A DNA stretch of 63,999 nucleotides, the filler included, from Perkinsus chesapeaki ATCC PRA-425 (Eukaryota; Protista; Perkinsozoa): the NCBI GenBank assembly GCA_013115145.1. It is 8 parts of 8 records of this genome, joined end to end, with 100 filler letters (N's around TTAATTAATTAA, not from the genome) between each part and the next. Parts side by side here need not be neighbours in the genome. Positions count along the whole stretch, not along the records: positions 29,820 to 46,052 come from JAAPAO010000709.1; 7 more parts are not named here. One strand, 5' to 3'. Position numbers and translations under genes: made by a program. Positions within the stretch are counted from its first letter, which is position 1. Every line of letters begins with the position of its first letter. The notes beneath the pieces were generated by a model. The model searched no databases. It was not told the origin of the DNA and saw only the letters and a list, made by a program, of their open reading frames with translations. This document shows, piece by piece, positions 2,524-46,052 of the stretch.

Positions 2524-3158
2524 GAGGACACGTTCGCTGGATAAGCTGTAGAATGTGATGGGAACACACGTTTACCGAAGTGACGACGACGATTGTTAAA
2601 AATTCCTCTCATTAGTGATACTATAGTGTGAGGATTTTAAGAGTGAATGATATCAACCAATTCTGCTTCATGACGTGTATGCTTTATCTTGGTGTGGACG
2701 GTAAACGTACTTCGACGCTAACACTTACCAGAAGACAGAATGCACAAACATGTTGCACGCATGCACAAGCAAACCGCTACCACGACGGAATTAACAATGG
2801 TGAGCCGAATGTCATCGTAAACAAAGGCTTTCCTCGGCGCATTCTGACACCTCTAGCTACTAGTATGGAACGTCCCTACAGGCAATTATAGCGCGAGATT
2901 TTTTAATCTACCAATCTGGCAACAAACATGTCATCCACCTTTAATGGACCATCCATTCAAATGATGCGACCGACAAAATTCTCCCAATTATAACATTTTC
3001 CACCCCACGCAGACTTACCTTATTTGAGCGCAAGATTAGTACTACAATAACAAAACAGATTTGATGAAGGGTGTGTAACAACAGATCAGGGAGCCTACTG
3101 CTCTACCAAAGAAGACCTGATTAATAATACCCTATTGGAGGTTCTAAGAACAATGACA

Positions 3159-4367
3159 TTAAGAATGATACGATAGAGCGCGCCTATGATGCTCGACTGT
3201 CTCGTCGTTGAGGATGCCACTACGCTTGTAATATTCGATCAGGAAGGCTTCGCAGTCTTTGCCATCGGTGCCGGGGACATCCATCCTCGGGTCGGGTTCA
3301 ACAAAGAATGGGATAGAATAACGCGATCTTTCACAGGTGGCTTGCCGAACAACGCGATGAATGTTAGACTTGTACAGTCCATTGGTTATTTGCATCATCA
3401 TATCACCAACATTAACCACGAAAAAGTCATATTCCGTATTTGGGGGCACTTCGATCCATTCTCTCCCGTTAGGAGAAAGGACTTGCAGGCCACCAGAGCA
3501 ATCTTGCAAAAGTAAAGTGAGCAGCCCATAGTCTCTATGAGCCCCGATACCGATGGTCTCGCCGGTCGGTAGCTTACACTGCTGACTCCCCTTACTCGGA
3601 GGGTAATGTAGCATTCTTAAAGTACTAACCATATTATCAAAGTTACAGTGCGCCACCAGACCAGGAGACAGTTTGTGGTAACGCTGCAAGGCTAGCTCGG
3701 AGAGGCCGATCAGCTGAGCGGAGAGGTCGACGATATCCTCATAGTAGGAGTTAACAAAATCCCTGAACTCTGCGGCAGTGATTGTTCCTGATACACCAGC
3801 CGTATTGCGATTTAGGGGCAACTGTAGGTCTTCGTGGTAATAATACAAATAGTCCGAAGCATCGGTGCTACTGCTTGCTGGTGACGAAGGCCGCATCTCC
3901 TCGCTGAAAGCTTTAGGCCATCGGTTCATCTCAGGATTGCAAAATAACTGTCCGACAACTGTGTCGGCGTGCAAACCAGAGACAGGAGGATTATCACGGC
4001 CAACTTCCCAGCCTTCCTTAGAGTCGATAACCTTATTCTGATAAGTGTTTTCTTTAATAGAAGTAAGACCTTCAATATTCTCACCACCGACGCCAAAGTA
4101 GCCACGGATAGAGTGTTCAACAGGCCCAAGAGTTGAGCGTTTTTCGCTGCTACTCAAGTTGAACAGGGCCGACGCCATCTCCATAGCTTTGCGATTTCTC
4201 GCTGGAGGGAACTTAAGGGCATTCTTAACCATCATAAACCCAACAGTGGTCATAGCCAAATCAATGGACTCGACAAGATCGGGCAATGGAGCGTTGAGGT
4301 CTACTATAGGAATGCTCTGTGTGGTGGGGACCATGTTCAGTTCTGACGGTTGTGAGTGAGAGGCCAC
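3159..4367 (-). CDS. 2-oxoglutarate/Fe(II)-dependent oxygenase (IPNS/DIOX-like)
   Basis: N-terminal IPIVDL; HxD motif HRDYGLLTLLLQD; NVGDMM; HRV; RYSIPFF. Confidence 0.92.
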   Translation of the reverse strand: MASHSQPSELNMVPTTQSIPIVDLNAPLPDLVESIDLAMTTVGFMMVKNALKFPPARNRKAMEMASALFNLSSSEKRSTLGPVEHSIRGYFGVGGENIEGLTSIKENTYQNKVIDSKEGWEVGRDNPPVSGLHADTVVGQLFCNPEMNRWPKAFSEEMRPSSPASSSTDASDYLYYYHEDLQLPLNRNTAGVSGTITAAEFRDFVNSYYEDIVDLSAQLIGLSELALQRYHKLSPGLVAHCNFDNMVSTLRMLHYPPSKGSQQCKLPTGETIGIGAHRDYGLLTLLLQDCSGGLQVLSPNGREWIEVPPNTEYDFFVVNVGDMMMQITNGLYKSNIHRVVRQATCERSRYSIPFFVEPDPRMDVPGTDGKDCEAFLIEYYKRSGILNDETVEHHRRALSYHS

Positions 4368-5121
4368 TTCTTATTATAAACCCAAGGTTGACGATACAAA
4401 GGCATAAGCAAGCCTAATAGGCTGCTGGATCTTGTAAGCTGCAAGATCGAGTTATGAGCAAATGACTACTTCCGTCACGCGCCTCAGTTCTTCGCGCGCG
4501 CCAATATGTTCGATTGTGCCGACCGAGGGACAGCGCTACTTCTTTATCGCTCGCCTGAAACCGTCATATCTGTAACGGTTCTAAGATAACTGTTCTATAG
4601 TTCCTTCTGAGGATCCTAAAATTAGGTGAACTTACACTGAGTTCTCTAGGGAACTTATATTGAGTTCTATCTGAACTATTTGCGATATAGTTGGACTTCT
4701 ATTTAGTCTATTCTAATCTATTAGCTGTGGTATCTACTCGTTAGTATCTGCATCTATAGTCTAATCTAGTTATAACCAAACTCTTGCGTTTAACTAGTAT
4801 CTTGAGCTCGTCTAACCACTCGCTCTACTATATCTGATTGCCTCTTCTAGTCGTGTTACAAGCCAAACGGGATGCTACTTAGATCTGGGACGAAATTATC
4901 TACTCTCGATCGCTCTGTTCTCTCTCATGATTCAACAGGTTTAACTCCTTCTACACCTCCTCCGTCTAACGGCGCTACACCATCATCTAGAACAACCACT
5001 AACCCTAGATCTTCTACGGTTTCTTCAATTATTAATCTAAGTCGTCCCGTACACGATAGCAGTTTTGAAGTGTAAAGGTGTTGGCCTTCGTTATTCTCAG
5101 CCCCCCACAGGTCCCAGTGCC

Positions 5122-6637
5122 TTATCGTGGCGTGGGGATTACTGGGTGGTGAATTCCAACCAGATCAAAACTGGAATCGAGCTGCCACCGCTCTAAGAAC
5201 GATTTTCCAGCTCTTACATCCACTCGAACGAGGTTCTCACCTCGGGTTCGACGTATGTCGCTGCCGGGGCCGAACGCGCGCATATCTCGGGTTGAACGTC
5301 CGCACACGCGTAGGGAAAGGTATACTATGGTTAATCAACCTGTAACTCTTGGAGGATTTCATCTGCAACAGGTCTAGAGTCTTTGGAGCCGTGTAGCAGT
5401 ACCAGGCAACCGTGTCCACCGTCCACAGCATGCGGCCCCACAACAACCTTAGTTGTCCCTCCCCCGTAGTCAAGCCCTATGACTAATATTCCCGCTGGGC
5501 CAGTCGAGCTACTTGACGTACTCAGTCCGAAACTCTCGCAAACAAACTCTAGCATCTGTTTAGCTACCAGTGGTAGCTAAACAGATGCAAACGAAACCTT
5601 GATAGCAGCCCTCGTGGGGAAGATAGCCAATCCAATGTCTCGGTTAATTTCGTTGGCTAAGAGCTCGACTTTGCGCTGGGACAGGCTAAGCTGTGATGCA
5701 TATGACTTCACCCTTGGCATATCCATCTTTGCGGGGGACTGAGGGACATCCTGGGGCAACTTGAAGAGGTGCGAAACGCCCTGCTCCTCTGCGAGTCGCT
5801 CAAAAAAGCGAGCTTTGCTATGTTGATTGAGGAACTGTAACCCTTGGAACCCCGCAATCAGTTTATCCCCCACTCTCAGCGAAACTTTGTCTAAGCTTCT
5901 CGAATCCTTCTTCGGCCGTCCCGAACCAGCTCTTCGCTTCTTCCAGCCACCACGCAATGCCTTGGGCTTGTTCTTCCACGCATAAGGGACAGAGCCTCGC
6001 GGGAGATATTTCTCCATCCAGGAGAGTGTCCCCTTCCCAAGAGCTATCCTGCAATTGGGGCACAGTCCCCAATAACGCTAGCCATGAGCTCCGCTGACTC
6101 GGCAGCCGGACGGAAGCCCTTCGCAGCATGTCCATACAGATAACGAGTATTTGCTTGTGATATTCACGAAAAACAAGTTCCCTGTGAAATAATCCTTGAA
6201 AAGCGTAACGTGCCAAGAATGAACGGTGCTTACTTAACACAATAATGTATTTTGCCTTGAAACACCCACCGTGCAAGATTGAAGCACTGAGTTCGAATAT
6301 CGGAGTGAAATTTTGGGGATCGGCTGGGTTCATACTCTACTGCTTGTCGATTTTTTAGAGGCACTCTGAAATTTGGCAGCACCGTGCTCCGTATGTCCCC
6401 CTGGAACTGCGCCAATCCGCTGGATCGAGATACCCGTTGGAGTGCCGGAGGAACTGCTCCAGAGAACTTCTTCCGGATTCGGTGAGCCTCGGTGGCCGTT
6501 CTGAATATACAGGAGTATCCATTCAGTCCCGCAAAATGTACTTTTTCGAATAACTTCTTCAGGGGGCGATTATTTTGGAGACACGTGAGACGTTCGGAAG
6601 CTCTTGAGAGCGGCTTTGTAAGCAGTATACGAAACAT
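5122..6637 (-). pseudogene. Fragmented ORFs, possibly a decayed or spliced Transib/RAG1-like DDE transposase
   Basis: GSGRPKK; LSLSQRKVELLANEINRDIGLAIFP resembles the RAG1 LSCSQY...GRQIFQP segment; LVIGLDYGGGTTK is a candidate first catalytic Asp. Similarity judged by eye only. Confidence 0.3.
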
Positions 6638-7833
6638 AATGATATCCGGAGGGGTTGGAGAGAGATCCGGTCTAAGGTGATAACTTTCGGTGATAAGTTC
6701 CGGTCTAAGTCCCAGACATGTAAGAATTGGAAGTTCAGTGAGTTGAGCTGCTCAACCCACTCCTGACAGGAGTCTCTGTCCCTAACATACCTTTTGGGGA
6801 TCAAACTGCTTGGTCCAAACAAGGCTAGCTCCTTGAAGCCTCCAAGTTGAAGGCGAAGCGCGATATTATTGAGCCGACAAGATGACCCTGATAAACGCCC
6901 CGATCATGGTTGCTCCGAGCAACTCGACATGTAGACAATGCCTTCTAGGCACCTTGACTGAGTCTTGAGTCTGACGATTCTTGAGCGTGCTTCTCGCAAG
7001 TAGTTGACTGAGGTATCACACTGCGGTAGTCACAGTTCCGATCGTACCTTGGATAACTCGTCGGGTGGAAAGCCGAGCTCTGCCATGGTCTGCGTGGTAT
7101 GAAGACGCGTGTAGTTCCTCCTACTAATAGATGTGACGTACTCCTTAAAAGAGGTACTTCTCAAGGACCTTGGCAAAATTCCTGGAATTTTCTTGGCAAT
7201 GGTTCAGTGATTATAAATGTACTATGAACAAGATGCTCGCAACTGGCATTTGCCAACTGCAGCCATGCTGGCTCGCCAAGACCGATTGAATCGGTGATAA
7301 CATTAATTTTGCCGAGCCTTATTGGGTTGAGAAATCCAGTGTTAGTCAGACTAACTAAGAGTCTTCAATAGAGACTAACTTCGTCTCCTCAAGTCAAGTA
7401 CCTTGACCGTTCAGAGCAACTACATGAATTGACTGTGAGAACTCAACCTTCTGAACGTTACGTTATAGGATTATATGGAGATGTGCGGTACATAGTGTAC
7501 CTATTTCATAATGAAATTCTCATTGGTTTGACAGGTGATATGGCTGCACTGCAATATTGAAAGTAATATCGACGGCAGTGTGCCAATACACATAGTGCCA
7601 ATACATATAGTGCCACCAGGTCGGAGAAGAAAATATAAGCAACCATTCGAACGGGCTTAGCCATACATGATCATATCCGCAATAACGATATTTTTATGAA
7701 AGTGAACGTTATCGCTTTTGACCCCAAAATGGAGGATGGCCTCATGGCTCCATCCATTATCCATTTGGGTTATTGCTATTTCCATCACAACATGCAACTC
7801 GAACCCATCTTTATTAGCCCGTCGGTCCCATGT

Positions 7834-28983: not shown

Positions 28984-30145
28984 GTGTTCTCGGAAGCCTG
29001 TAGAGCGGCTCAGTAAGAGTATTGCTAAACTTAACTTGAAGTTTCCTTAGAGCCTTTCACATGAGTTCTAGTCATGAACTTCAATCCAATTAAGGTACGT
29101 TGGAGTACTTCCGAACTCATGCTGATCAAAGGTCCGTCATGAACTGGAACCTGGAGCAAGCCTTCTCCAATAATCATTGAACATACATCATCATAACATC
29201 AGATCGACTCGCGCCTCTGCTGATTGGCTTACAGCGTGTATTCTTATGAGCGTGCCAGCGTCGAAAACATGACGAGTATCTCGTGCGTCGATCGTCTTGA
29301 AGCTTCCGATGTCTAGCTAGGTTGAAAATGTGTCAACTGCAAGTCATGCCATTCACTGCGAAGACAAAAGTGGCCCTAAAGAGCCTGCCAGCCTCATAAT
29401 ATACAGCCATTTTCAGAATCGGTGTTTACCGTGACATGCATTGCTCAAGTTTCATCTCCAATGGCCCGCCAAGATTTTGCTGCCGGCAGGATGGCCGTAC
29501 TTCTTATGCTACCTGTCAGTATCACGCTTATCACTCTGGTAGGGAAAGGGTGCTACCACGGAGGCTCCCTGGAAACAAGTGAGACCTGCAACTTCAAGGC
29601 ATATGCCGCTGTTACGGTTAGCCTATTTCCCTCTTCAGCCAATTCTGTTGATGAAGCGCACGTTCTCCCGAACGAGGAGCTATTTTCACCCGAGTAGCAC
29701 AAGGTGGACTTTATTCATTNNNNNNNNNNNNNNNNNNNNNNNNNNNNNNNNNNNNNNNNNNNNTTAATTAATTAANNNNNNNNNNNNNNNNNNNNNNNNN
29801 NNNNNNNNNNNNNNNNNNNTAGGCACACCATCGTCTGCCAGGTACACCGCCGGCGCGTCCCTACCTCCCAGTCCCCGCAGTCAGAGGTTTCAATGGAGCG
29901 ACAGAGTTCTGCACGTGTGCACAATAATCCTCCAAAATTCGCTGTCCAAATTTATGTTTCGATATGGCCGATGTTTTCGCAAGCTGCATGACACAATGGA
30001 GCCACCGGCGGATTAATGACGTATGCACGTTCGTTATCTGCTGAGCAGATTCTGCTCTCTTGTACAACAACAGCATCTGGAGTGTCAGCTGCACGCATGT
30101 ACAAGCCCTCTGCGTCACGTCGCTAACTTGTAAGTGCTTTTCATC

Positions 30146-32493
30146 ATGCGGCTACCTCTATGTTTCCTGTTATCTGCCCTCGCCTCGCGGCTGGTCACAT
30201 CCTACCTTCCTCCTCCGGTGATCTGGACGGATTTGTCCTCTGAAGAAAAGGCCACAACCTACGTGAACTCGATGCCTATCGGCAATGGAGGATTGGCAGC
30301 CAATGTATTTGTCGATACCAAACCGGAAGGCCCACCAAGATTTGGTCTTTTGATATCTGACCAACGCGCATGGAATGAAGCCGGCGAGCTCATGAAAGTA
30401 GGAAAAGTCACTTTCGACCTGTCACCAAGTCCATGGGACTCCAATATCTCGAGAACTTCATTTCAAATGGTGAGTGTCTCAGACTTCCCGCCATTTGCTT
30501 TGTGGAGGTTGCCAGCTTTTAGTTACTGAATGTAAGCATGGGAGCCGTCGTAATCGATATAGGTGATCCAGCAACTCGCATCACTTCATACGTTGATGCC
30601 AACCATGACGTTCTGGTGGTAGATATCAGCTCCCCCCGAGGAGTGATTATTTCAACAACAGCTGAGCTGCTTCGTCCTGCCTCATCCGTGTTAGAACCAC
30701 AGTTCGATTGTTCGGCTTATGACATAAGCGCCGACTCCTACCTCATCGACAAGGAAACTAATATCACTATTGGCTGGAGTCACCTGAACTATGGTGCCAA
30801 TTTCACGGCACATACTCTGACACAGTTGAATCTCGAGCCTTTGTATGATACGACGGAGGACAGGCTGCACCACAGACACACAGCTGCTGTCTGGAACTTT
30901 TCTGAGCCTATGAACGAAGTGTCAGAAGGGACCGTCAAGACAAGGGCAAGTGTTAAAACATTACGAACAGTTATTGCCGTGGCTACCACCGAAACAGAGG
31001 CATCTACTAAGGCTCCTGAGGGTGCGATGACGCTTATTTGTGCTTATGATCCAAAACCAGCGTGGCAGAACCATACTAATTGGTGGGAGAATTTCTGGAA
31101 TACAAGTTGGATAGAGATATCTGGTGAGAAGGCTGAAGCAGTGAACGAGAAGTATACTTTACAGAGGTATATCCAAGCCATACAGACTCGACAACCATAT
31201 CCTTTAAAGTTCAATGGTATGTTGTTCACTGCACAGCGAGACAATCCAGACTATCGTCAATGGGGAGGCCTTAATTGGTGGCAAAACGCACGTATGCCAT
31301 ATTATAATATGCTTGTGAGCGGCGACTTTTCTATGCAAACAAGTTTGTTCAAGTCGTACCTGGCGACTCTTCCTTTTGCTATTGAAAAGACCAAGATATA
31401 CTTCCCCGGCATGAAAGGCATAGCGGCTTACTGGGATGAATATGTCCACCCTTTGATTGGCACAACACATCCCCAGAGCTATGGGTGTGGTCGTGCTGGC
31501 AAAAGTGACCCCCCTATATGGTACTCCGATGATCCGTGGAATCATTATAACCTTCAGGGGGCGCTAGACCTCAGCTTTCTCATGTTGGATCACTACGCCT
31601 GGACTGAAGATGATGAGACCTTGAAAGAGAACTTGGTCTTAATCGACTCCGTTATTAACTTTTACAGTCAATGGAGGACTACTAAAGATGACAATGGTAA
31701 AATTGTTTTATTCCCAACACAGTCCGTCGAGACATGGCAGTGCCCTGGTTATGAGAACATGGTTGCTGGAGTGAACTGTACAAAGAATGACCAACCAACT
31801 ATATCCGGTCTCTGGGCTGTTGTCACAAGACTCCTCAGGCTACCAGCGAGTCTCACTACTCCTGACCAACGTGCAAAATGGGAAGCCCTTTTATCTGTCC
31901 TTCCTGCTATACCTACTACTAAGTCTAGGGAAGGCGGCACAAAATTAGCACCGTGTGAAGTCTGTTCCCTTTTCGCGAGAAATGTCGAAAATGCTGATCT
32001 CTATGCTGTTCATCCGTACAGGAATATTACTGCAAAGTCCTCGGGACCCGAGCTCGGTCTGGCAAAAGCCGCCTATGACGAAAGGCGCTTTACTTCGGAT
32101 AAAGGTTGGAATCAAAACGTAATGGATGCCGCTTTGATTGGCTTGGCTAGCGAGGCTGAGAGGATGGTTATCGCCCGAGCATCTTATCCTCCTGCGGATG
32201 GGTACCGATTCCCTGTTTTCGCTCCACACTTGCAAGACTACCCTCCATCGGGTGACCACTATGCTGTAATGAACAATGCTATAGTCTACATGTTATTACA
32301 ACCTATGGACGATGAGTTGCAGAACATGATCTTATTTCCTGCATGGCCATGTCACTGGAATGTTAGCTTCAAACTGTGGGGCCCGGGAAGGACTGTTCTC
32401 GAAGGGTCACTTATTAATGGTCATCTTGAAGGTTTCAAAGTCTATCCAGCTACCCGTGAACAAGCGGTTGTTATCCGCGGTTGTCAGAGCTAG
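30146..32493 (+). CDS. Secreted GH95-like / DUF5703 glycoside hydrolase; join(30146..30469,30523..32493)
   Basis: Signal peptide MRLPLCFLLSALAS; SMPIGNGGLAANV; YTLQRY; KFNGMLFT; DYRQWGGLNWWQNARMPY; LFPAWP. One phase-0 GT-AG intron joins the two ORFs in frame. Confidence 0.8.
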
Positions 32494-33342
32494 ATATCTG
32501 AGTCGACAAAGCCTCTTCATTGTAAGTCAGAGGCGTTTTTCACAAGGTATCTAGAATGCGTTATATGGGACTTCCTATTTGAGGGATGATCCTCCTTGTA
32601 GCAACACCACGGTTTTTTTCTTCAACTTTGCTGCATCATCTTTTCTTCAGTCAGTTATCTCTCCTTCTGTTACAAGACACTTGCAAAAAACAGTCTTGTT
32701 GACCAACAGAACACTTGCGTTGATGTTGTTTACTGGTCTCCATGTTCTGGATGATATGGTAGCATAAAATAAGTAGTATCGTATGTGAGGAACATTGGCA
32801 GTGAGTGAGTCGCGAGTACGAACGACTGTTCATGGGGATCATAGTGAAACTCGTCTCTCGGCATGGCACTCCTCGAGCGCTATACACAACCAGGATCAAA
32901 TCACTGTTGAGCAGTCTGTTCGCACCGCTTCTATTAATATCTGTTGCATCCTTCATTGAAGGACTTTCAATGACACTAGAGGATCCAGTAGAAAACCAGC
33001 AGGAATCCTGCTGCAGGATGGTCCGGGCTTTTTGCTGCTGGGGAAAGTTCTGAGTTAAATCCAACGTTAGTACCGCGGTAGTTGTGGCTCGCCCGCAGAT
33101 CGGGGATAACTGATACTGGCCAACACAAGGCTTTTGGGGAATATAACAGGCTGCCTCGCCTGGTGAAATTGCTGTATCTTAGTTCGACCGTAGATAGATG
33201 AACTTCTTCTTCTTATTATTATACTGTTACAACTTTCTGAACCAAGGAACTAACACATCTTAAACCGTTAAAAGCAGTTGCAGCCGGTATCAAGGTATCA
33301 TCGAACTAAATCATATATCCTGTGGTTCGAGGATACATCATA

Positions 33343-35712
33343 TTAGAGCTTGTTGGGAAGAAGCCTTGCTGCTGTTGTTGTTGCTGCATTGGCGCACCAT
33401 AGTATCCAGGATAAGCTCCACCCATTGGGGCGGTCGTCTGGGGCATCAACATGCCGGTACTCTGAGGAAGGCCTGACCGGACAAAACTTATCGATGCTAC
33501 TTCGGACGAATCTAGTTTCGGTCACCTGTGGCAACAACAGGAGCTTGTCCGAGGCCGATCTTTCTGATGAGTTTGTCGAGCTTCTTCGCTGATACAGTTG
33601 CCTTCTTTCCCTTCCGGCCTAAAATCGATAAATACAACACAAAGACTGAACTCCCGATGATGCAGCACCCCACCCAACTTACGGTTCTTCTTTTTCTGTG
33701 CTACCTCATCATCCACTTCGTCCTCTCCCTCGGGCTCATTGAACGGATTTGTCGCTGATAAGTCAGGAGTCGAGTCCTGAGCAGTAATGAGGTGGAGTTC
33801 GTTATGCTCCGGCAATGTAACTTCTGGCAAAATTTCTATCACAGGGAACAATTTTTGCCTCTCGAATGAGACCAACCTTCAACTTTAACCCCCTTCCGAA
33901 GCCAACTATGTATTACGGGCTTCTTAGCTTTCTTGCTTGACGCCGATTTCCCTCCCTTCCACCACTCGTTATCCGTCTCGTCATCCTCATCTTCCGAATC
34001 GGAAAGATCTAACAAGCACTGAGATGCATATTGAACTAGGGGCTATTACCAGCCAAAGCGTTCCGAAGGTCAGGAGTTGAATTGAATCCAAGACTCTTGT
34101 CCAAAAGAGGTGAAGTTAGACTTAATGTTGTTGCGGGATTGGCCAGCATGTTCTGAGACGCTACCTGAACGAGCATACCATAACCGAAAAGCCGAGGGGA
34201 ATGCCGTTTTTCATATTCCAAGGTAGGCTTACGTGCTGCATTGTGATGAGTCTGAGCTGGTTCATTTGGGAATTAAGATGCTGAAGTAGCTGAGGGTTTG
34301 CCGCTACCTGCGGGTTACCAAGCATCTGCGAAATCTGTGCCTGAATGACGAAATTTAGGCAAAGACATTTCTAGCGGTTGCGCATCAAACTTAGAAAACA
34401 TCCCCTTCCAATACTACCTGCATCATCTGTATGAACTGCGCTGTTTGCTCATTCTGCCGGGCCTTTTCCGAAAGGTGCAGAGTCGTCGCTGGGGCCTCCA
34501 TCGCAGCCTGGGCAATACCGTATCCCGGCAGTCTCGGAAAATAGAACTACACTTACCGACATAGTGTCGTATAGTTGTTGCATGAGCATTGGATTCTGAA
34601 GCATAGCTGGATTAGCAAGCACCTGACGACGATGATGTGGTTGGGGATCCAACCTGGCTGTACTACTACCGTGTCCAATTGGTACTTCAAGTTCACCAAC
34701 AACTGCTGTTGCTGGGACTGGATCTAAAGCATAATGTCCGTAAAGAGAGATACACCCGAATAAGCCTTACAAACATCATCTGTTGTTGAGTCTGCATACT
34801 TTGGGGATTCATCATACCTTGAGACGGCATAGTTCCTGGGGGTACCATACCACCCTAAACGGGAACATAGTCACATCGGAGTAGTAGGAGGAGCACCCCA
34901 TGCAGCAGTACTACTTGCATCATCATTCCTGGTGCAGTCTGTGGTGGCATCATATTATACGATTGTGGCGCACCGGCGGCATTATAGTACATCCCCTACC
35001 AACGTGCTATTACATCATCCCGAGTTCCGCCTACTACTGATTGAGTGGGCATCATCTGTTGCTGTGCCTGCTGTGGGTATCCAGGTTGCTGCTGTGGTGG
35101 GTACCCAGGTTGCGGATATCCTTGCTGCATAGTAGGTGTCTGATCATCTCCGCATCAGAAGGATATATAACCAATATACACTACTGAGGCTGGGGGAGCT
35201 TGTTGTGGAGGTGGAGGCGGAGGAGCAGCAGCAGCGACGGGCGTTTGAAAGAAAGGATCGTCGTATCTGATGATTCACCATGCAGGTACCTGAATTGACA
35301 CTCCCAAGTATTACTCATCATCCCATGCTGGTGCTGCTGGTGGTGGAGGAGTAGAAGTCTTATGATGCTTCTTTTTCTTGGGGCTCTTAGGAGCTGGGGG
35401 AGGCGGAGCAGGTGCACTACTTGACCTAATACAACCACCCAGTATAGCGCTAATACACACTGCCATTGCATTTTACTTCTTGGAGCCTCCTCCAGTCCGT
35501 TTGATCTTATCCTCTGGTGAATCCAATACCTACTTTGTTTCTGATGGATCCTTGGTAAGATATGTTATTACATGATTCAATGCTCTATTTAGGTCACCAT
35601 CGGCACCACTCCACATCTCAAGCAACCAATCGTCATCCAAATCATTGCCCATCAACGACTTGGCTTGGTTGCTGAAATTCTCAAAATCAGCGTCCTTAGA
35701 ACGAAGAGCCAT
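33343..35712 (-). CDS. Hypothetical multi-exon protein with UBA/CUE-like N-terminus and Q/P-rich low-complexity middle
   Basis: FENFSNQAKSLMGNDLDDDWLLEMWSGADGDLNRALNHV is a UBA-like three-helix pattern; downstream exons are Gln/Pro/Met-rich then acidic. Exon structure not fully resolved. Confidence 0.5.
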
Positions 35713-35939
35713 CAGATAACAACAAAATCTATAAAACTAGCAGCAAGTCACTGCTAGCAACAGGAGCAGCAGCGGCAGCTCCCACGAAACCGTTTCGCCA
35801 TAACCTTCTAATTTACCATTCACCCAGTGGAGTCCATAGGCATAACTCGAGTCACCAACTGATTGCTCTATCATCTAGCATCCTAGTAGACCCTCGTTAG
35901 CCATGCCTCCATGATGGGCCTAAGTGTTGAGTACGCAAG

Positions 35940-38514
35940 TTACCATACAAAGTTGTCATTGGAATTTTGCGCGCGCCCTGATGATCGATTATGATCAAAC
36001 GAGCACCTAAGGGAATCGAGAGCACTATCCCCGTGTTGCAGCGATTTGACTATGTCCGTCCAGCGGGGTCTCTTTCGCTTTACTCGGATTGTGAGATCTG
36101 GTGGTGGAGATGTTAAGCCAAGATGGACGCTTCCTAGCAAGGTAACGAAACTCTGATGCATAATTAAGTCCTTAACGGTGTTTTGAGAAATTCCTGTGTG
36201 GACTTCTTCTACCGAAGGACGGTATTGAGAATAATCGTTCAGGACTATTTGAAGTACTGCTATCAACCATCAATCCCTGATAAGCATTATTTTGGTGCCC
36301 ATTGGAACTATGTTCCAGCCACTATGTGGCTCAGAGCGAGAAGACCAGCCATGGAGAATATCGGTATGCTCCTTACGCAATACTATTTTGACTTCATCTG
36401 AATCTGAAATCTCTTCAGCAAAGTCTATGTATGGCGTGGTAAAGGAATCGGCACAGCAAGTAGTCCGACCATTGGGTCAATTCGTGCAGTATAACTGCCC
36501 AGGTTTTTTGCAAGTAATGAGTACCTAGTTTTTTGTTGACATAAAATTAGTTATTTTCTTAGAAAGTAGTAGCCGTCTTTGGCCTGTGGATGGCTTATTC
36601 ATTAACCCTAAGATACACTTATGGAGATATGAATAATAACTGGTAACGTACAGTAAGTACGTCCTATCCAACCATACCGCCGAGATAGGTTCTATTTGGA
36701 CAAGATGCATTCCTATGCCCAGGCCAATGAGCTCGCTGATAAGGGATTCTGGGACACGAGACAGCAGGCGCAAGCGAAGAAGGTAAGTTCAGGTTCGCCA
36801 ATTCCCATAGTTAAGTGATGCTTAGGAAAAGGAGTACAGCGATACCTGTAATAGACTTAACGATCTTTGGGATAAATCAATAGCTGAGGCCACAGAAGCG
36901 AGGAGCTTTGGCAAATTGTAGTCTGGAGATATCACCACTCGTGCTCGATACCACAATTTGTTGCAGATGCGAGGCATTGAAGGTTGATGAGGAGCAGCCA
37001 CTTCCTTTGGAGGGTGTCCCGGATAAGGTTCAATGTAATACGGTCAAGCAGTTGTACTCGGTAGATCAGTGACATTCAGGGAGATTTGGCCTCATCCCCT
37101 ACGGCGGCGATAATCCGGACACTCAACTTTTCCCTACTCCTGATGAGGAGCAGCCTGCTGGAGCATACCAAGTGAGCTGAATTCCGCCGGTCTTTTTTTC
37201 TAGTATTACATTACATTGTCAGTTCATGGATCCTTCAAGCTATGGTGATTACATTGAGAGGGTTGATAATAAGCCTAATCCCATCCGAAAAGCGAGGCAG
37301 ATCTTCACCAGTGCGTATATGCCTCCAACTAAGTAAAGCTAATATTTTGAAGAGATTCTGTGTTGGCGATGCTGATGATGATGACTACGACAACGCTGGA
37401 CACAGCTGTACGAGTTTTATGGTCGTTTCTTCGCGTGGATCCTCAGCGGTTGTGTTCCAAAGTAATGCATCGTTCCCTATAAGCTATGAATTTCACTTGT
37501 GCGGGAGCAACAGCATTCACTGAGAACTCCAATGGAAGGGTGTGCGTTGAACTCGTGAGCAACAAAGGGTGTCTCGCGAAGGAAGCACGCAGTGGTTTGG
37601 TGCTCAATTTTCAAAGGTATATAGAAGTCTGAATTCGAATTATAGACTAGGTTGCTCTCCCGGTTCGCGGAAGTCTAGCACGTAGTGGATCCGCTGGAGC
37701 TGCTCAACCTTTGCCATTTAGCGTGTAGATGGTTTATACTTTATCATGGTTTAACATATCATAAACTACGTCCTCGAGACCTCTATTGTTTCTTGTAACC
37801 CGTACAGTAATTACAACCCCTGTTGAACAGGGCCTATTCACTCGTCAATTTTAGCGCAACCAGCTCTTTCCATCGGAAGGGCGGGGCGGGTGCCTCCGAT
37901 GGGGAACGAGTCCATGATTCCGGATTCATCCTAAGGGCTTTATTTGTATGAATCTAAAGATCTTCTCGTACTTGCTGACAGCTGTTCTGTCGAACGAAAG
38001 TACAGTGGAGAAGATCAGCGCCAGGTGTTTAACGCCATTTATAAGGAAGGGTATGCTATAAAGCATATGAAGCTTAACTGGATGAACAACGGTGAGTTGG
38101 GAGTTATTCTACTTCATGTTGGAAGCATCCTTCAAAGGTATCGCTTCCTTCCTCACCTTCATGCGGTTTGGAACTGCATTAACAGTCAAAAGTCTTGGGA
38201 TCTTTTGGAAGATTTTGCCAACGGTAGTTTGAGTTTTACTTCACGGAGTTGACTCCCGCTATGTTTTCAGAGACCCACTCCCTTCAACCCCCTCACGGAT
38301 GGACTCCAGGGTCCACAATCAATGGGAAACCCGTTAAGGGAAGTTTCTGATTTAACAAGCGGCGCTCTGCTTGTGCCGCACAAGCTGTGCACCGCTTTTG
38401 AGGAGAAGCAATTCCCAGATCGATATTCGCTTTTATAGCCGCTTGTCTCAGGGGTGGTAAATGCCCGGCAGCACATTCAGCCCCTTCGACTCGATGTATG
38501 TTCCTAGAAGTCAT
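35940..38514 (-). CDS. Hypothetical multi-exon gene
   Basis: Successive short open segments separated by GT-AG introns (e.g. ...NAVPNRMK|NNSQLTVVHP...); CTAC motif near start; no family recognised. Confidence 0.35.
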
Positions 38515-41500
38515 CTTCCCTCTGTTTGGTCTTAGTCGCCTTCACGCTCTTCTCGACCACAACATACGTTCTGTGTTAACAACATAATCCTAGGCAGATT
38601 CAAACTAGATTTTCCACAAACTTCAACAAGTCAACCTTCATGGTTTCAGAATCTTTCTAAATCGGCCATGTGCGTTCGATGAAGTCCGTTGCTCCGTGTT
38701 AACAGCCGGTTCCTTCCGCGTTGCTAGCTGAATGTGCTGAACGAGTGATGTGAGTCTCCGCAAAGAATCGTTACTGGTGAGACTCTGGAGTCACTGGTGA
38801 CACTGTGTCGCGCGAACGCGCCAGACCACACCCGAAAAATATCTTGCATGCAAATGCAAGAAGATGAACAAAAATCCGTGCCGCTCGATTTTGTAAATTA
38901 ATTACATATTGATTCCATGCCTACCCCAACCCTCCATGATGCAGGCCTTGCTCAAGGCGAATTAACTGGGAAGCCACGCTCTGTGATTGAGACGGTAAAG
39001 CTTGCAGCTAGCCGGCTCGCTGAGGTTAGACGACATCAACAAGCCTTTACACCAGTTATTGCCCGAGAGGATCCAGACGTAAGCCCAACAGAAACGCCTC
39101 AGTCTCGAAGTGAGGTTTTCAGGGGTCCATAGCAAGAATTCGCAGTGAGCTGCAGAATGTCCATGAGCGTCGGAGATTGGAGAGGTTACAAGCGGAACAA
39201 CGCCAAGCCAATAACGATTTTTCTGGAATTGATGAGGGTGTTCCTATTACGCAGGTTATGCGTGAAGACCTCGTGAGAGGGACTGAGGGTGACCAAAGAT
39301 TGAAAGAATGGCTCGATAAATATGTCAACTCATCCCAGTCATCCTCCGTCACGACAAGTTGAAGATGAATTTGAATTCGACAAAAGTGTTTTATGTGTAT
39401 CCTTTTGGTGCCTCTATCGGCAAGTTGTTTTTTATATTTCTGGTACGTAGTCTTTTCTAGTTGCTATCGTCATCATTTGACTGTTCTTTGTGTATAGCAT
39501 GGAACATAAGTGAACAATTGCATGGATGCTGAGTTAGTGACTTTGTAAACAATTCAACTGTTCAAGTTGATTAGTAATTAACAACCGTCAACAGTCTAAC
39601 AAACAACTGAACGTGAAACAACTGCCATATTAAACGGGAACGCCTAGCACTATGCTGCAGCTATGACTCGTAGTCTGTGAGTCCCTAGGGCCCATCCACT
39701 TGATGGAAGAGGAGCCATGGTTGAGGGGTGGGAATTTTAGCAGCCAGTATACACAGGTTCGAGTATTGGTTCGACTGAGACTTTTACTGCCATTTCACAA
39801 GCTACGAGCGCTATGAACGGGAAAGGATGTATAAGCAATTTTCAGTCAACGATCTTCAACCGTCTTGCTAAACCCGTATGAGTGGTGACATTGACGACCT
39901 ACCGAGTGCAGACTGCACTGCACTGTGCAGTGCACTGCAGTGGTCCTTCTTGAACAGGCACCTTCTACTGAAATTGCTCAAGTGTCCCACAGTGTGCCCG
40001 GCAATGCCGGGCCGACACACGAAGGGAACATCGAGTGTCAATTGGGGGGAAGTATCACAGTGATACTATCACCCTCGTCGTATGCCTAACACGCATTGCC
40101 TGCCATCAACGCTACATCATGAAGTGCATGACATGAACCCACATAAGCCATTTGAGAAGCTCGATCGAGTCAAGCGCGCGAAGTTCGCGCCGCAAACAGA
40201 GATTTCCACTTCAAACCAGTGAGTAGTTAGTAACTACCGAGTAGCTAAATATTACGGATCTATCTGCCATATTACGTGTGTCCGTTATCAATCATTATGG
40301 TCCGTCAACCTAGTCTTACTTGTTAATTGTAACTCTTGTCTTCTGTTTTAGTTGAAGAAAGAACAGTACTTTCATATTCTTTACTGTAGCCGTTGTGTCA
40401 TAAAGTATTGCGTCGTTTTAAAGAAGAATGTAGAGGAAGGTGTTTAGTACATATCTTTAGCTTTCTCGAATCTGACCAACTCCGCCCGACCAACCAACTG
40501 ACTCGAATCGAATCGAGCCAACCAATCATTGGTCACCAATGTGTACCTCAAGAAATTTCTCAGCCTTCGCACTAAATTTCACGGTATGGGTCAATTTTGA
40601 ACTCAACTGAATGGGCTTCACGGAAAACTTCACTGTGCAATAGTGAGCAGTAATACCATCGTTACAATGAATAAGATTATCACGCACCATAACCCGCAGT
40701 TATTATGACGCGTGAGAACTTGAGAAAGACGGCCTCGGTTGTATGCAAGAGAATTCTGTGTTAGCGATGCTTGGTCATTCAACCCATCCAACAACTCGTT
40801 ATGAAGAGCAATCTGAAAAGCTGAACAATTCGTATAGTATACGGCAATGGCTCCGCACCTCCTCAGATATCGCTACGGACATGGTATTCAAGTTGCTTAC
40901 TGTACCCTCAAGCTCGTTCAGCTGCTCGTCTTGGTCCGCCATCATTCTATCTTGGACTGAAATATCACAGTATTGCTTAATGTTGCCTGGGCTCTAGAGC
41001 CCAGTTACTGGGTCCCAGTGTAGCTAACACCTTGCATAAGTTCTCTGTTGGATAAAGTTTCATGATAGTTGTCTGGTAGAGGCACTGCGATGTTGTTGGG
41101 CACATTCGAAGTTCGAGCCGGTGTGACGGTTTGCATGTCCCGAAACAAAATCTGAGTATATAAGGCAGTAAATTCACGAAGTCAACGATGACTGTTCACA
41201 AACTACCAACATTTTTCAACAGTGACTATTACAGCGCCGTACACGGAGATTTGGTTCAGTTCGATTTCGTACCCCTCGAACTCGTACACCCGAGGGCTCG
41301 TACACTTCTATGATTTTTTCAGTTCAATAGGGAGATCACTAGCTTTTTTTATCTAGAGGTCGACTCGACCTGGTCGAGTGTCCAAATCTCATAGGCGACA
41401 TAACTGGCAAACTTCGTCTGTCCGGCGGAGCGACTAGCAATTTGTGGGGGAAAAAGTGAGTCTTATCCCAATTATTAGTCGATTCTTAGTTCCAAAATTG

Positions 41501-41540
41501 GTTTACTGAACGAGCGGAATGCAACATGAAGTTTCGTAGT

Positions 41541-41625
41541 CAGAGTGTTCTAGTGGTATAAGGCTCATCAGATGAGCCTCATCTCGCACGGGGAGGTGGT
41601 TGGTTCGAATCTGGCCAGGAGTATT
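41541..41625 (+). other. Degenerate tRNA-like (SINE-head-like) sequence
   Basis: A-box-like TCTAGTGG, B box GGTTCGAATC at 41602-41611; stems poor; interrupted by hairpin 41561-41579. Confidence 0.5.
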
Positions 41626-41739
41626 TTCAGTTCATGGGAGTGTGCAGAGCTGAAAGTTTGGGGTCACCCCAATGGGGTGTCTAAGCTGGAGTTGTATTAG
41701 ATTTGTAGTAAAATTTTAAATTTCAATTTTGAATCTTAG

Positions 41740-42010
41740 AATTTTTCGAGTGTACGAAATGAATGTGTACGAGATATGCTTGTGCGAAAAAATGTGGATT
41801 GAGATTCTGGTGTACAAAATCGGGGTGAGATAATAGTGAACGTACTTTTGGTAGTCGAGCTGCCGATGGTCTGAATTTCAGACCTGAATTTCAGTTCGCT
41901 CCTATTCAGACTCTGAATAGGAGCGAACGTGCACGTGTTTCAGGCAATCGAGTGGAGTGTGAACGTGATTTATGAGGTGAACGTTTATGAGGTTCGTTTA
42001 TGTGTGAACG
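41740..42010 (+). repeat. Copy 1 of an interspersed CGTACAC-rich repeat family
   Basis: Aligns to the reverse complement of 59520-59830 (shared gagataatagtgaacgtacttttggtagtcga and gatatgcttgtg.gaaaaaa). Confidence 0.85.
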
Positions 42011-42245
42011 TTTATTTATCAAACATCAAGTCGACGTGTTTTATGTGTACAAATCGTTATACACCGACGATAACATATACGGTACTTCTCGTTCTTCTCG
42101 ACTTCGGCATTAAAGGTGATAGGACTTTGACTTGCCCGCTTGTAAGCGCACATGCCCGCTCTGGGAGAGTGATTATCGGATGACGTCATGTGATCTTGAC
42201 GCAGTCTACCGCTTGTTTAGCAACTTGAATCGAGAACGACCCAAA

Positions 42246-42292
42246 TCTGCATTGCATGCAGAAGGCCCCGAGTTCAAACCTCGGCACGTCCA
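42246..42292 (+). pseudogene. 3' half of tRNA-Ala(TGC), 5'-truncated leftmost unit of the array
   Basis: Anticodon arm through discriminator identical to array copies; followed by the same 75-nt spacer. Confidence 0.85.
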
Positions 42293-42372
42293 CTACTGAC
42301 AGTGTACATATCACAAGTTAGCGAAAGACCAAACACGAGTGCACTAGGAACGCCATGCAGCACCATCGGGCG

Positions 42373-45072
42373 GATCTGAAGTGCAGGCGGGTACCTTACT
42401 GAGCTTAGCATTGCCAGCGACATCGAAGCAGCTAGCTACACAAGAACCCGAAGATGCAGTTCCACCCCAGACAAGGCTTCAGTATGCTACACTGCGGCGG
42501 GCTTTTCTGAACGATTTCACACGGCATCGCAGTGACCTAGAGAGAGAGCTCGGTTCCATCACAGCCACCAAAAGCCTGAGTATCGATCACACCAGAGCTG
42601 GAGCTTCTATATCAATGGATAACAAGCTTGGCTACCTGGTGGCTTTGATAGCTGATGAGGGTTTCATTATGAGTGTCCTGGCGGTAGGTTCGTGCTCACT
42701 TGGGGAGCTTGCTACGGGATTACGAGAACTCAAAGGGCGAGTTCCCGTTGACAATAATGGTGATCCACGTGAGCCGTATTTCACCGTCTACTTGGATAGA
42801 GGATGCTGCGGCCGGGAGGGGGAGGCTGTTAAACGGTTGTTCATCAAGAATACCGGTTGTACTGTTAATCTTCGAGTTCGACTAGACTGCCTACATGCTC
42901 AAATGAGACTTACTCGCAGTGTCTCCTCAACGAACCACTGCCGCTTCGGGTTGTTCTGTAGAAGGATAGCGCGAGCTTTTTTCTGCTCGTCGAAGGAGGA
43001 TGAAGAGAAGGCCAGGGCCGAGCATATTCAGAAAGGCGGAGACGGTCACCTCAGCCATGAGCAAAAAAGGAAACGAGTGCGAAGATTCATACCACAGCCA
43101 GAGTTACTAGAGAGCCGATTGGCGAAGGTGGTACAGCACTTCTACAGGCTCGATATTGACAGCGAATCTCATCATCCGGCCAGTAGTACGAGCGACATGC
43201 TGCAACAGAAGCTCTCCGAGCCGTTGCTCGGAGCATCGTTCTGGCCGACATACCGCAGCCTTCTCGGCCATGTGAAGGCCGGTTGCCTCAGCGATTTTAA
43301 CGCTGAGGAGGTTTGCACCTTGGACGCGTCCGGTTCATTCCGGTGGTGTCGCGGCACAAACCGCAGTGAAAACCGGCATGGAGTATGGAGGAGAGACCTG
43401 TCCGGCGTGAGCATTTTGTCACCGACTATGATGGACGCCCGGTTGTTATGGCGAGGCGTTTTCGCGAACCGCCGCCTTCAAAACAAGCTCGACCCTGACG
43501 TGCAAACTCTCCCGATACCACTGGCGCCCAAAGAGGCCGGGTCGCAATTGCGGGGCCGGGTGAAGCTCAGCGATAACCCTGTAACGTTTGGGTCGGAATA
43601 TCTTAAGGCTACCAACGAGAAGCCCTGTCAGACGACATTTTGTGAATGGTTACGAGAAGGCAATACAGGAGAGGACGAGGCAACTGAAGGGAAAGAACAC
43701 TGCCAAGGTGAATATGAAGATGAGGGTTCCGACGATGGTTCATCGGTGTCCAGCGATACGGCTGAGAGCGCATCTGACATTGGTGAAAGGCTCAGGTCTC
43801 TTATGAATTCTGGGACTACTAAAGGCAAGATTCTCAAAATGACTGGACCGCGTGCTGCGCCACATCCGGTCCCTCTGTCGAAATGGACTCCGTTGGTTAA
43901 AGGCATTATCGGAGAGCTGGTCGCGGAAGTCGGCCATCAGAAGCCTGATGAGATCTATAAGCGCTACCAGAAAAGAGCCTTCAGTGAGCTACACGATGCC
44001 CTGGAAGGAAAATCTGATAAGCCTCCCCTACCCCTCCATGATGTCACTCCGCAGGACATCAGAGTGTACGCCCGTGAACTGTGTCGACTCCGCTCACATG
44101 TCCCTATCACTGTGAATGCTATGCAACAAGAAGTGATGCTGGAGCGAGAATTCCGAGTGCAGGATAGCCAGCAAGATATCGTTAGAGCCGAAATCAAGAG
44201 CGCTGTTGTGAATCTGGTAGGCAATAACCCTCCGGATCGTCCTGCACCAGTCACCGGAGACGACATTGTTAATGACTGGAAGGGGCAGAAGGCAAGAAAA
44301 GATAAAGTGAAGGATAAACCAGAGCCTCCACCGGAAAGAGATGCCTTGTCGGAAAGATGCCAACAAAAGGAGAATGACTCCCAGAATGGTAATAATATTA
44401 TGAGTAGAATAGGAGTAATGAACTAATATGCGTAGGTAATATAGGTAGAGGTGGGATAATGAGCATGGTATGTAAGTTCTGTAAGAAGCCCAAGGCGAAG
44501 GGCTACAATGATCATGACTACAGCGACGGAAGCCGTTACGGAATATGCCCCATGCAGCCGCAGAAAGACATGCCCGATCCTGCAGTTGTGGCCTATGCTC
44601 GTGGTTCAGCGAAGGAGTTGCTGGTGGAAGGTATCAACGTGAAGAAGGGCACACGGCACTGTCGATTATGTGGTATACCTCTGAGCGCGGTTATACGAGA
44701 TAAGGAGGGCAATTTCCTTCCTGGTCACGAGAGGTTTTCGGACGAAGAGCTTGTTTTCCACGACTGATTTTATGTTCATATGGTCAGGTTCATTGCTAAG
44801 AAGGCGAGGAGTGATACCGCCTCGCCGTGAACGAGGCTCGCTACACGAGCAAATGCAGCATGGTGAATATAAACGCAAACTTGAAGTTTGACGACACCAA
44901 TAAAGCACTCTTTCATTTACTGTGAGGTGTTGGATTGAAATCTATCAGGATAGTGGGGTTTTCGAACTTTGAATAGTGTTAGATGGGATATTGCAGCCAT
45001 AATAATCCTTTTTTTCTTCTTCTTTTCTCCCCCCCTTTTCCCCCTTCCTTTTCTCGATTTTTCCACCCAGCC
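42373..45072 (+). mobile_element. Dada-type DNA transposon inserted in a tRNA-Ala gene; left end deleted
   Basis: Left flank is spacer + tRNA nt 1-5 (GGGCG, 42368-42372); right flank resumes at tRNA nt 7 (45073). Interior encodes a DDE transposase. Confidence 0.8.
42381..44767 (+). CDS. Dada-like transposase, 5'-truncated; join(<42381..44388,44436..44767)
   Basis: SIDHT, YLDRGCC, RLDCLHAQMR (DxxH) and RGTNRSENRH motifs. A 47-nt phase-1 GT-AG intron (44389-44435) joins in frame to the exon with CKFC..H..C and CRLC..GH zinc-finger motifs. Confidence 0.8.
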
Positions 45073-45138
45073 GTGGTGTAGTGGTATCACGTCTGCTTTG
45101 CATGCAGAAGGCCCCGAGTTCAAACCTCGGCACGTCCA
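45073..45138 (+). pseudogene. tRNA-Ala(TGC) disrupted by the transposon (nt 7-72 remain)
   Basis: Acceptor 5' strand replaced by the transposon end ccacccagcc. Confidence 0.85.
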
Positions 45139-45213
45139 CTACCAACTGTATACATATCACAAGTTAGCTAATAACCAAACATGAGTACACTAGGAACGCC
45201 ATGCAGCACCATC

Positions 45214-45285
45214 GGGCGTGTGGTGTAGTGGTATCATGTCTGCTTCGCATGCAGAAGGGCCCGAGTTCAAGTCTCGGCACGTCCA
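45214..45285 (+). tRNA. trnA: tRNA-Ala(CGC)
   Basis: GGGCGTG/CACGTCC acceptor, TCTGC-TTCGCAT-GCAGA anticodon arm, CCGAG-TTCAAGT-CTCGG T arm. Confidence 0.9.
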
Positions 45286-45360
45286 CTACTGATAGTGTAC
45301 ATATCACAAGTTACCGAAAGACCAAACATGAGTGCACTAGGAACGCCATGCAGCACCATC

Positions 45361-45432
45361 GGGCGTGTGGTGTAGTGGTATCACGTCTGCTTCGCATGCA
45401 GAAGGCCCCGAGTTCAAACCTCGGCACGTCCA
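45361..45432 (+). tRNA. trnA: tRNA-Ala(CGC)
   Basis: Complete cloverleaf, loop TTCGCAT. Confidence 0.93.
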
Positions 45433-45507
45433 CTACCAACTGTATACATATCACAAGTTAGCTAATAACCAAACATGAGTACATTAGGAACGCTATGCAG
45501 CACCATT

Positions 45508-45579
45508 GGGCGTGTGGTGTAGTGGTATCACGTCTGCTTTGCATGCAGAAGGCCCCGAGTTCAAACCTCGGCACGTCCA
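45508..45579 (+). tRNA. trnA: tRNA-Ala(TGC)
   Basis: Complete cloverleaf, loop TTTGCAT. Confidence 0.93.
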
Positions 45580-45654
45580 CTACTGACAGTGTACATATCA
45601 CAAGTTACCGAAAGACCAAACATGAGTGCACTAGGAACGCATTGCAGCACCATC

Positions 45655-45726
45655 GGGCGTGTGGTGTAGTGGTATCATGTCTGCTTCGCATGCAGAAGGG
45701 CCCGAGTTCAAATCTCGGCACGTCCA
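45655..45726 (+). tRNA. trnA: tRNA-Ala(CGC)
   Basis: Complete cloverleaf; shares variants atcatgtc and gaagggccc with the 45214 copy. Confidence 0.9.
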
Positions 45727-45801
45727 CTACTAACTATATAAATATCGCAAGTTAGCGAATAACCAAACATGAGTGCACTAGGAACGCTATGCAGCACCAT
45801 C

Positions 45802-45873
45802 GGGCGTGTGGTGTAGTGGTATCACGTCTGCTTTGCATGCAGAAGGCCCCGAGTTCAAACCTCGGCACGTCCA
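45802..45873 (+). tRNA. trnA: tRNA-Ala(TGC)
   Basis: Complete cloverleaf, loop TTTGCAT. Confidence 0.93.
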
Positions 45874-45985
45874 CTACCAACTGTATACATATCACACCTC
45901 GGCTCGTCCACTACTAACTGTATACATACCACAAGTTAGCGAAAGACTAAACGTGAGTGCACTAGGAACGCCATGCAGCACCATC

Positions 45986-46052
45986 GGGCGAGTGGTGTAG
46001 TGGTATCACGTCTGCTTCGCATGCAGAAGGCCCCGAGTTCAAACCTCGGCAC
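45986..46052 (+). tRNA. trnA: tRNA-Ala(CGC), cut by gap, T6A acceptor change
   Basis: GGGCGAG start, otherwise identical to array copies up to the N run. Confidence 0.7.

Follow-up and report, generated by a model that had tools for sequence, protein, structure and literature searches.

A 5′-truncated Dada transposon in a tRNA-Ala gene array of Perkinsus chesapeaki, very probably from a family specific for tRNA-Ala genes

We analyzed a stretch of 63,999 nucleotides (nt) of DNA from Perkinsus chesapeaki, a parasite of clams (the window), along which all coordinates are given, and focused on an insert that interrupts a tRNA-Ala gene in the piece at positions 29820–46052 (16,233 bp). The insert is very probably the 5′-truncated, non-autonomous remnant of a DNA transposon of the Dada superfamily, from a family specific for tRNA-Ala genes. 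The assignment was made from the junctions of the insert with the tRNA gene, the encoded transposase, and related elements of Perkinsus olseni.

Results

Interruption of a tRNA-Ala gene by a transposase-encoding insert

ARAGORN and Rfam detected tRNA-Ala genes every 147 bp from position 45214 to the end of the piece. Each array unit consisted of a 73-nt gene and a 74-nt spacer, and the anticodons TGC and CGC were mixed. At the head of the array, Rfam found a partial tRNA at 45073–45131 that covered model positions 7–64 only, and direct reading revealed an insert of 2,700 bp (42373–45072) between nt 1–5 and nt 7–73 of a tRNA-Ala gene. A preliminary description of this DNA had placed a 2.7-kb insert between tRNA-Ala nt 1–5 (42368–42372) and nt 7 (45073), which agrees exactly with direct reading and Rfam. 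The start that it gave to the feature, 42246, had to be moved: it is the first base of a truncated tRNA-Ala gene (nt 26–73) at the left edge of the array, outside the insertion.

The open reading frame (ORF) at 42381–44426 contained all four transposase motifs listed in the preliminary description, namely DHT, YxDRxCC, DxxH, and RGTNxxE. Its best protein match was P0001, a P. chesapeaki hypothetical protein from a public gene model. This model uses exactly the same splice, 44389–44435, to join the downstream zinc-finger ORF in frame; the zinc-finger exon that had been proposed to be joined by an intron was thus found again as a putative splice across a 47-nt GT..AG gap. The zinc-finger exon aligned with P. 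olseni proteins, and the P. olseni ORFs read through the position of the putative intron without such an interval. The two exons were searched apart and were joined for the comparison of the junction with P0001, never as a query. Pfam gave no family for either exon or for a full-length relative at E values up to 1.

Membership in the Dada superfamily

Kojima and Jurka (PMC3706591) described Dada elements as encoding a DDE transposase that contains a DxxH motif, a CCCC zinc finger at the N-terminus, and a CCHC zinc finger at the C-terminus, the last of which was described for all Dada transposases. The elements generate 6–7-bp target-site duplications, lack terminal inverted repeats, and occupy fixed sites in small nuclear RNA (snRNA) or tRNA genes; the DxxH motif is a signature of Dada, hAT, P, MuDR, and IS256 (PMC3706591). 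In an unscored comparison by eye with Dataset S1 of that paper, the motif order of the window protein and its relatives was the same as that of Dada-tG_PMar. The shared blocks were, in order, a first Asp block (SIDHT-like), a second Asp with two Cys, LDxxH, RGSS/TN-RSE followed by RH, LLWR, NRRL, IPIPL, a VxFG-EYL block, and a terminal CxxC..H..C. The nearest other families were tRNA-Gly(TCC) elements of P. olseni, with protein identities of 33–34% (34%: E 2e-89). The motif order and this similarity uphold the Dada-type assignment made at the outset.

A profile built from three family members retrieved 579 proteins at E < 0.001. In an alignment of 53 sequences, E330 was invariant, and D69, D139, C142, C143, D169, and H172 were at least 90% conserved. 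The AlphaFold model calculated from this alignment had a mean predicted local distance difference test (pLDDT) score of 80 and a predicted template modeling (pTM) score of 0.71. Its best structural match was ISCth4 of the IS256 family (Foldseek E 5e-4; Z 13.6 over 263 residues), followed by Hermes (Z 9.9), P element transposase (Z 8.2), and retroviral integrase cores (Z approximately 8). PMC3706591 names the same relatives for Dada. ISCth4, Hermes (hAT), and the P element share with the window protein an RNase-H-like DDE core, a helical insertion domain, and C/DxxH. However, sequence identity to IS256, hAT, and P proteins was 8–12%, and the latter elements are bounded by terminal inverted repeats and do not strictly target RNA genes. 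The family studied here had no Pfam match and no inverted termini and resembled IS256, hAT, P, and MuDR in fold alone.

In summary of the Dada features, the DDE core with DxxH, the C-terminal CCHC finger, the 6–7-bp duplication, the fixed site in a small RNA gene, and the lack of terminal inverted repeats were all found in the window copy or its relatives. The N-terminal CCCC finger was present in the P. olseni proteins P0002 and P0176 and absent from the window copy because its 5′ end is deleted. A non-LTR (long terminal repeat) retrotransposon, considered because the insert is truncated at the 5′ end and exact at the 3′ end, was ruled out by the DDE fold, the defined 5′ terminus of the relatives, and the 7-bp duplication.

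Insertion site of the related elements in P. olseni

The closest relatives of the window ORF were P0002 and P0176 of P. olseni, which were 62–63% identical to it, consisted of 1,006 and 1,015 amino acid residues, respectively, and extended approximately 145 residues beyond it at the N-terminus. The loci of these two proteins and one more P. olseni locus were compared with the window. All three other copies with a readable 3′ end adjoined tRNA-Ala nt 7 through the same 23-nt end, so that, at four loci in two species, the 3′ end of the element lay directly against tRNA-Ala nt 7 and the element was oriented like the tRNA. The coding DNA of the window copy was only about 65% identical to that of the P. 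olseni elements, against the identical 23-nt 3′ end. A chance junction is excluded because the same end meets the same tRNA nucleotide at three loci of another species.

Complete junction pairs were read at two P. olseni loci, L003 and L004. On the left side, tRNA nt 1–13 were followed by the first bases of the element, GGTGGTCTC, and the 7-bp sequence GTGGTGT (nt 7–13) was present on both sides. The duplication could equally be 6 bp, TGGTGT (nt 8–13), with the terminal G as part of the element; ambiguity of this kind in duplication length has been discussed for other Dada families (PMC3706591). The preliminary description had proposed an Ala-specific family with GTGGTGT as the predicted duplication: the duplication was seen at both complete junction pairs, and random flanks were not seen among the other readable copies. 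The intact P. olseni element was about 3.67 kb long with a single ORF of approximately 1,010 codons. No terminal inverted repeats were found when the first 200 bp of L003 were compared with the reverse complement of its last 200 bp, the longest common word being at most 7 nt and none lying at the tips.

These data bear on whether the family targets tRNA-Ala at all. A single ancient insertion into a tRNA-Ala gene could have been inherited by both species and multiplied passively with the array. Passive duplication is easy in tandem arrays, where both the window copy and L004 are found, the latter internally deleted and among 47 tRNA-Ala genes; the issue was also raised in the 2013 paper (PMC3706591). 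However, L003 lies in a solitary tRNA-Ala gene with a variant sequence and unrelated flanks, and therefore the shared site reflects targeting rather than array amplification. Furthermore, the array spacers were unrelated between P. chesapeaki and P. olseni. The P. olseni copies were 96–98% identical to one another, and two had open full-length ORFs, compared with about 35% divergence between the species, which requires recent movement rather than passive co-amplification. We regard passive inheritance as very improbable, and the P. olseni family was apparently active recently.

Several further observations were made on these relatives. A perfect GC-rich palindrome with 16-bp arms and a 3-nt loop lay some 60 bp in from the 5′ end of the tRNA-Ala elements (L003, 256–291; L004, approximately 7250–7290), and the internal deletion of L004 began right after it. 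A 2,295-bp contig from Logan SRR12548988 (L005), which reached neither end of the element, contained a frameshifted family copy whose protein was 59–65% identical to the window ORF and whose DNA was about 68% identical to that of P. olseni, which suggests a third lineage or species. A candidate 5′ junction with a 4-bp duplication at L001 88–97 was rejected, as alignment to L003 identified the first 100 bp or so of L001 as an element 5′ end ridden with G/C errors.

Damage to the window copy

Homology between the window copy and the P. olseni elements started about 785 bp inside the latter, near residue 145 of the protein. The window copy lacked the 5′ terminus, the subterminal GC hairpin, the left copy of the target-site duplication, and tRNA nt 6; only the right copy of the duplication survives. 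An in-frame stop was present at 42345–42347, and there was no ATG before codon 79, hence none ahead of D69; the annotated protein therefore begins past the first catalytic Asp. Judged from its sequence, the window copy is defective, non-autonomous, immobile, and catalytically dead, that is, an ordinary dead remnant. The features of the locus are listed in Table 1.

Table 1. Features of the interrupted tRNA-Ala array and of the insert (window coordinates)
Feature	Position	Strand	Basis or remark
tRNA-Ala 3′ part, nt 26–73	42246–42293	+	left edge of array; direct reading, repeat family D3
Normal array spacer, 74 bp	42294–42367	+	matches spacers of downstream units
tRNA-Ala nt 1–5, GGGCG (left flank of insert)	42368–42372	+	alignment with intact unit
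5′-truncated Dada element, 2,700 bp	42373–45072	+	same orientation as tRNA; homology to P. olseni elements, common 3′ end
Transposase ORF, 681 codons	42381–44426	+	exon 1 would end at 44388 upon splicing of the gap
First catalytic Asp, D69, in SIDHT (42579–42593)	42585–42587	+	nearly invariant in 53-sequence alignment; shares its column with the first D block in Dada-tG_PMar
Second catalytic Asp, D139, in YLDRGCC (42789–42809)	42795–42797	+	53-sequence alignment, Dada-tG_PMar
DxxH motif, D169..H172, in LDCLH (42882–42896)	42885–42896	+	53-sequence alignment, Dada-tG_PMar
Catalytic Glu, E330, in RGTNRSE (43350–43370)	43368–43370	+	invariant in 53-sequence alignment
Putative intron, 47-nt AT-rich GT..AG interval	44389–44435	+	contains in-frame stop, shifts frame
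C-terminal zinc-finger exon	44436–44767	+	C-x2-C-x10-H-x10-C, then second C-x2-C..H; free ORF 44459–44767
Subterminal polypyrimidine tract	45008–45049	+	in all copies and in tRNA-Gly families
3′-terminal 23 nt, ending CCACCCAGCC	45050–45072	+	identical in P. chesapeaki and P. olseni
tRNA-Ala(TGC) nt 7–73	45073–45139	+	first 7 nt (45073–45079) are the retained target-site duplication copy
Remaining tRNA-Ala (TGC/CGC) array, off contig end	45140–46052	+	ARAGORN, Rfam

Where P. olseni has GAGGCGAAG at the homologous point, GGGCG is followed directly by GATCTGAAG in the window. The truncation would most simply be explained by a deletion from one GGCG motif to another or by interrupted repair following excision. 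The same structure could be the direct product of a one-ended or otherwise aberrant transposition, in which the 3′ end was joined normally, the 5′ side was joined internally, and a full insertion never existed. This is consistent with an exact 3′ junction and an internal 5′ junction only 8 nt off the expected site; one-ended transposition has been proposed for Dada-tL_DR copies with mismatched flanks (PMC3706591), and tRNA-Gly elements in the P. olseni loci L002 and L006 have anomalous flanks. However, a single deletion of about 793 bp between the two GGCG motifs yields the same junction, and no second example with such a structure was seen. We therefore consider an aberrant origin unlikely and favor a full insertion that was truncated later.

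Despite the immobility of the element, both the 681-codon frame and the zinc-finger exon have stayed open, which could point to a host gene domesticated from a Dada transposase and kept for a cellular function, as is known for a Dada gene in carps. However, the insert is still within its target tRNA and retains the 3′ terminus of the element, it has neither the N-terminal finger nor an ATG ahead of the first catalytic Asp, and nothing pointed to an orthologue at a syntenic locus outside a tRNA gene. Domestication is scarcely credible against these observations, and we treat the insert as a decaying transposon.

Other Dada-like elements in P. olseni

The tRNA-Gly elements of P. olseni have in common with the tRNA-Ala family a 5′ subterminal GC hairpin, a 3′ polypyrimidine tract, and the motif TCTCGATTTT. 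One of them, encoding P0151 (L007, approximately 2595–7105), was inserted in tRNA-Gly(TCC) with a TTGGTC(T) duplication at nt 7–13; its 5′ subterminal GC hairpin was perfect, with about 25 bp per arm, and its 3′ polypyrimidine tract was very long. Elements of the P0003/P0181 family (L006, 2655–7310; L002) were found in tRNA-Gly(TCC) of a Val-Gly-Met-Leu array with anomalous flanks. Their 3′ end adjoined the spacer past tRNA-Gly, and in L006 the 5′ end adjoined nt 8 of an inverted tRNA-Gly, the whole array being inverted on the 5′ side.

On the minus strand of L002 (5043–5100), the 3′ end of another Dada-like element, with a polypyrimidine tract ending CCCCCCAGCC, adjoined nt 7 of tRNA-Leu(CAA). 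The intact array of L006 had a normal tRNA-Leu 5′ end at the corresponding point. The terminal CCCAGCC of this tRNA-Leu element and its site match those of the tRNA-Ala family.

Surroundings of the insertion

The onset of the array at 42245/42246 was abrupt, with the gene truncated at nt 26 against unrelated sequence; neither a transposon end nor a polypyrimidine tract was found at this boundary. One array unit (45855–45933) was 184 bp long instead of 147 bp and contained a 37-bp internal duplication that runs from the 3′ end of the tRNA into the first part of the spacer, as detected by Tandem Repeats Finder (TRF). A tRNA-like stretch at approximately 41540–41625 was rejected, having no support from ARAGORN or Rfam. 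In the rest of the piece 29820–46052, neither a second copy of the insert nor its missing 5′ part was found. At 30134–32493, two neighboring ORFs on the same strand (131 and 651 residues) matched successive parts of the Pfam profile DUF5703_N and probably belong to a single gene that is interrupted by an intron or a frameshift.

Discussion

The 2013 list of P. marinus Dada elements (PMC3706591) contains families for tRNA-Leu, tRNA-Ile (two families), tRNA-Gly, and tRNA-Tyr, and three families without a defined target. The preliminary description had named tRNA-Ile, tRNA-Gly, and tRNA-Tyr as the targets of the described Perkinsus families; all three are on this list, which extends to tRNA-Leu as well. 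According to the 2022 survey (PMC8869645), Perkinsus Dada families insert at nt 8–13, a rule to which the tRNA-Ala family conforms. The family resembles Dada-tG_PMar, -tIA, -tIB, -tY, and -tL in host genus, protein architecture, motif order, the A-box site at nt 8–13, the 6–7-bp duplication, and the lack of terminal inverted repeats. In contrast to those families, its target is tRNA-Ala (TGGTGT followed by AG) rather than tRNA-Ile, -Tyr, -Gly, or -Leu, and a putative intron of 47 nt is present in the P. chesapeaki copy, while the P. marinus elements were reported to be intronless (PMC3706591).

The family had been put forward as possibly undescribed. In agreement with this, the 2013 and 2022 papers (PMC3706591, PMC8869645) describe no Perkinsus Dada family in tRNA-Ala, Repbase being outside this comparison, and a full-text literature search on Dada in Perkinsus brought up no other relevant paper. 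The 2013 protein dataset (PMC3706591) contains none of six peptides that are conserved in the proteins of both P. chesapeaki and P. olseni. What is new is the tRNA-Ala target specificity within a known Perkinsus Dada clade, and a prior deposit in Repbase is possible.

Dada elements in tRNA-Ala are also known from fish (Dada-tA_DR and Dada-tA_OL), with which the Perkinsus family shares the superfamily and the target gene. However, fish Dada-tA is inserted near the anticodon, opposite to the tRNA, with GCGCAA flanks that replace tRNA sequence, and it is long, intron-rich, and related to Dada-U6 (PMC3706591, PMC8869645). The Perkinsus elements occupy nt 7–13 in the orientation of the tRNA with native tRNA flanks and thus differ from the Dada-tA lineage in site, orientation, and flanks. 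That both groups hit a tRNA for the same amino acid is a coincidence of target choice and does not speak for common descent. Fish Dada-tY, -tK, -tN, -tR, and -tS occupy the orthologous site at tRNA nt 8–13 (PMC8869645), but differ from the Perkinsus family in hosts, tRNAs, and hexamers, theirs being TAGCTC, TGGCGC, and TGGCCG. Perkinsus tY and fish tY are not closely related (PMC8869645).

Intact members of the tRNA-Ala family in P. olseni encode a transposase of about 1,010 residues, which has a CCCC finger at the N-terminus, an RNase-H-like DDE core with DxxH and an inserted helical domain, and CCHC fingers at the C-terminus. This enzyme would excise the element and join it, in the orientation of the tRNA, at the place where the acceptor stem meets the D-arm (A box), and staggered cuts would lead to duplication of nt 7–13, GTGGTGT. 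We infer both the catalysis and the recognition of the target through its primary DNA sequence. In the window copy, some 785 bp at the 5′ end would later have disappeared along with tRNA nt 6 and the left copy of the duplication, probably by microhomology-guided deletion or interrupted gap repair after excision.

Several points weigh against this interpretation. The window copy itself can show neither the duplication nor the 5′ end, so that the family assignment depends on relatives from another species. The annotated P. chesapeaki proteins included no full-length copy. The comparison with published Dada proteins was made by eye on a supplementary alignment and is unscored, and the site specificity is based on four loci only, so that off-target copies are possible.

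The ends of the elements gave a further hint about targeting, which comes from the relatives, as the window copy has no 5′ end. The first 12 nt of the P. olseni tRNA-Ala element matched the displaced tRNA nt 14–25 in register at 9 of 12 positions (chance approximately 4e-4 for one fixed comparison with equal base frequencies), which nearly restores the A box at the left junction. The L007 element likewise starts with ATGGTT, which matches its own tRNA-Gly target, and the subterminal 3′ module was common to the families, only the last 8 nt or so being different. A parallel is found in Dada-U6 and Dada-U1, for which subterminal repeats in common with the target were reported (PMC3706591). That Perkinsus Dada elements find their target by matching their own ends to it is a tentative idea that we consider doubtful. 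If the ends do co-vary with the target, specificity would be readable from, and perhaps changeable through, the ends of the element and not the protein alone.

No DNA transposons other than Dada elements are known to integrate at fixed nucleotides of multicopy RNA genes, and Dada elements have been discussed as models for safe, site-specific gene delivery. The family described here adds tRNA-Ala to the Perkinsus targets at the nt 8–13 hotspot. The P. olseni element is a compact example, with 3.67 kb and one ORF of about 1,010 codons, and the end sequences conserved across two species could help to define what the transposase recognizes.

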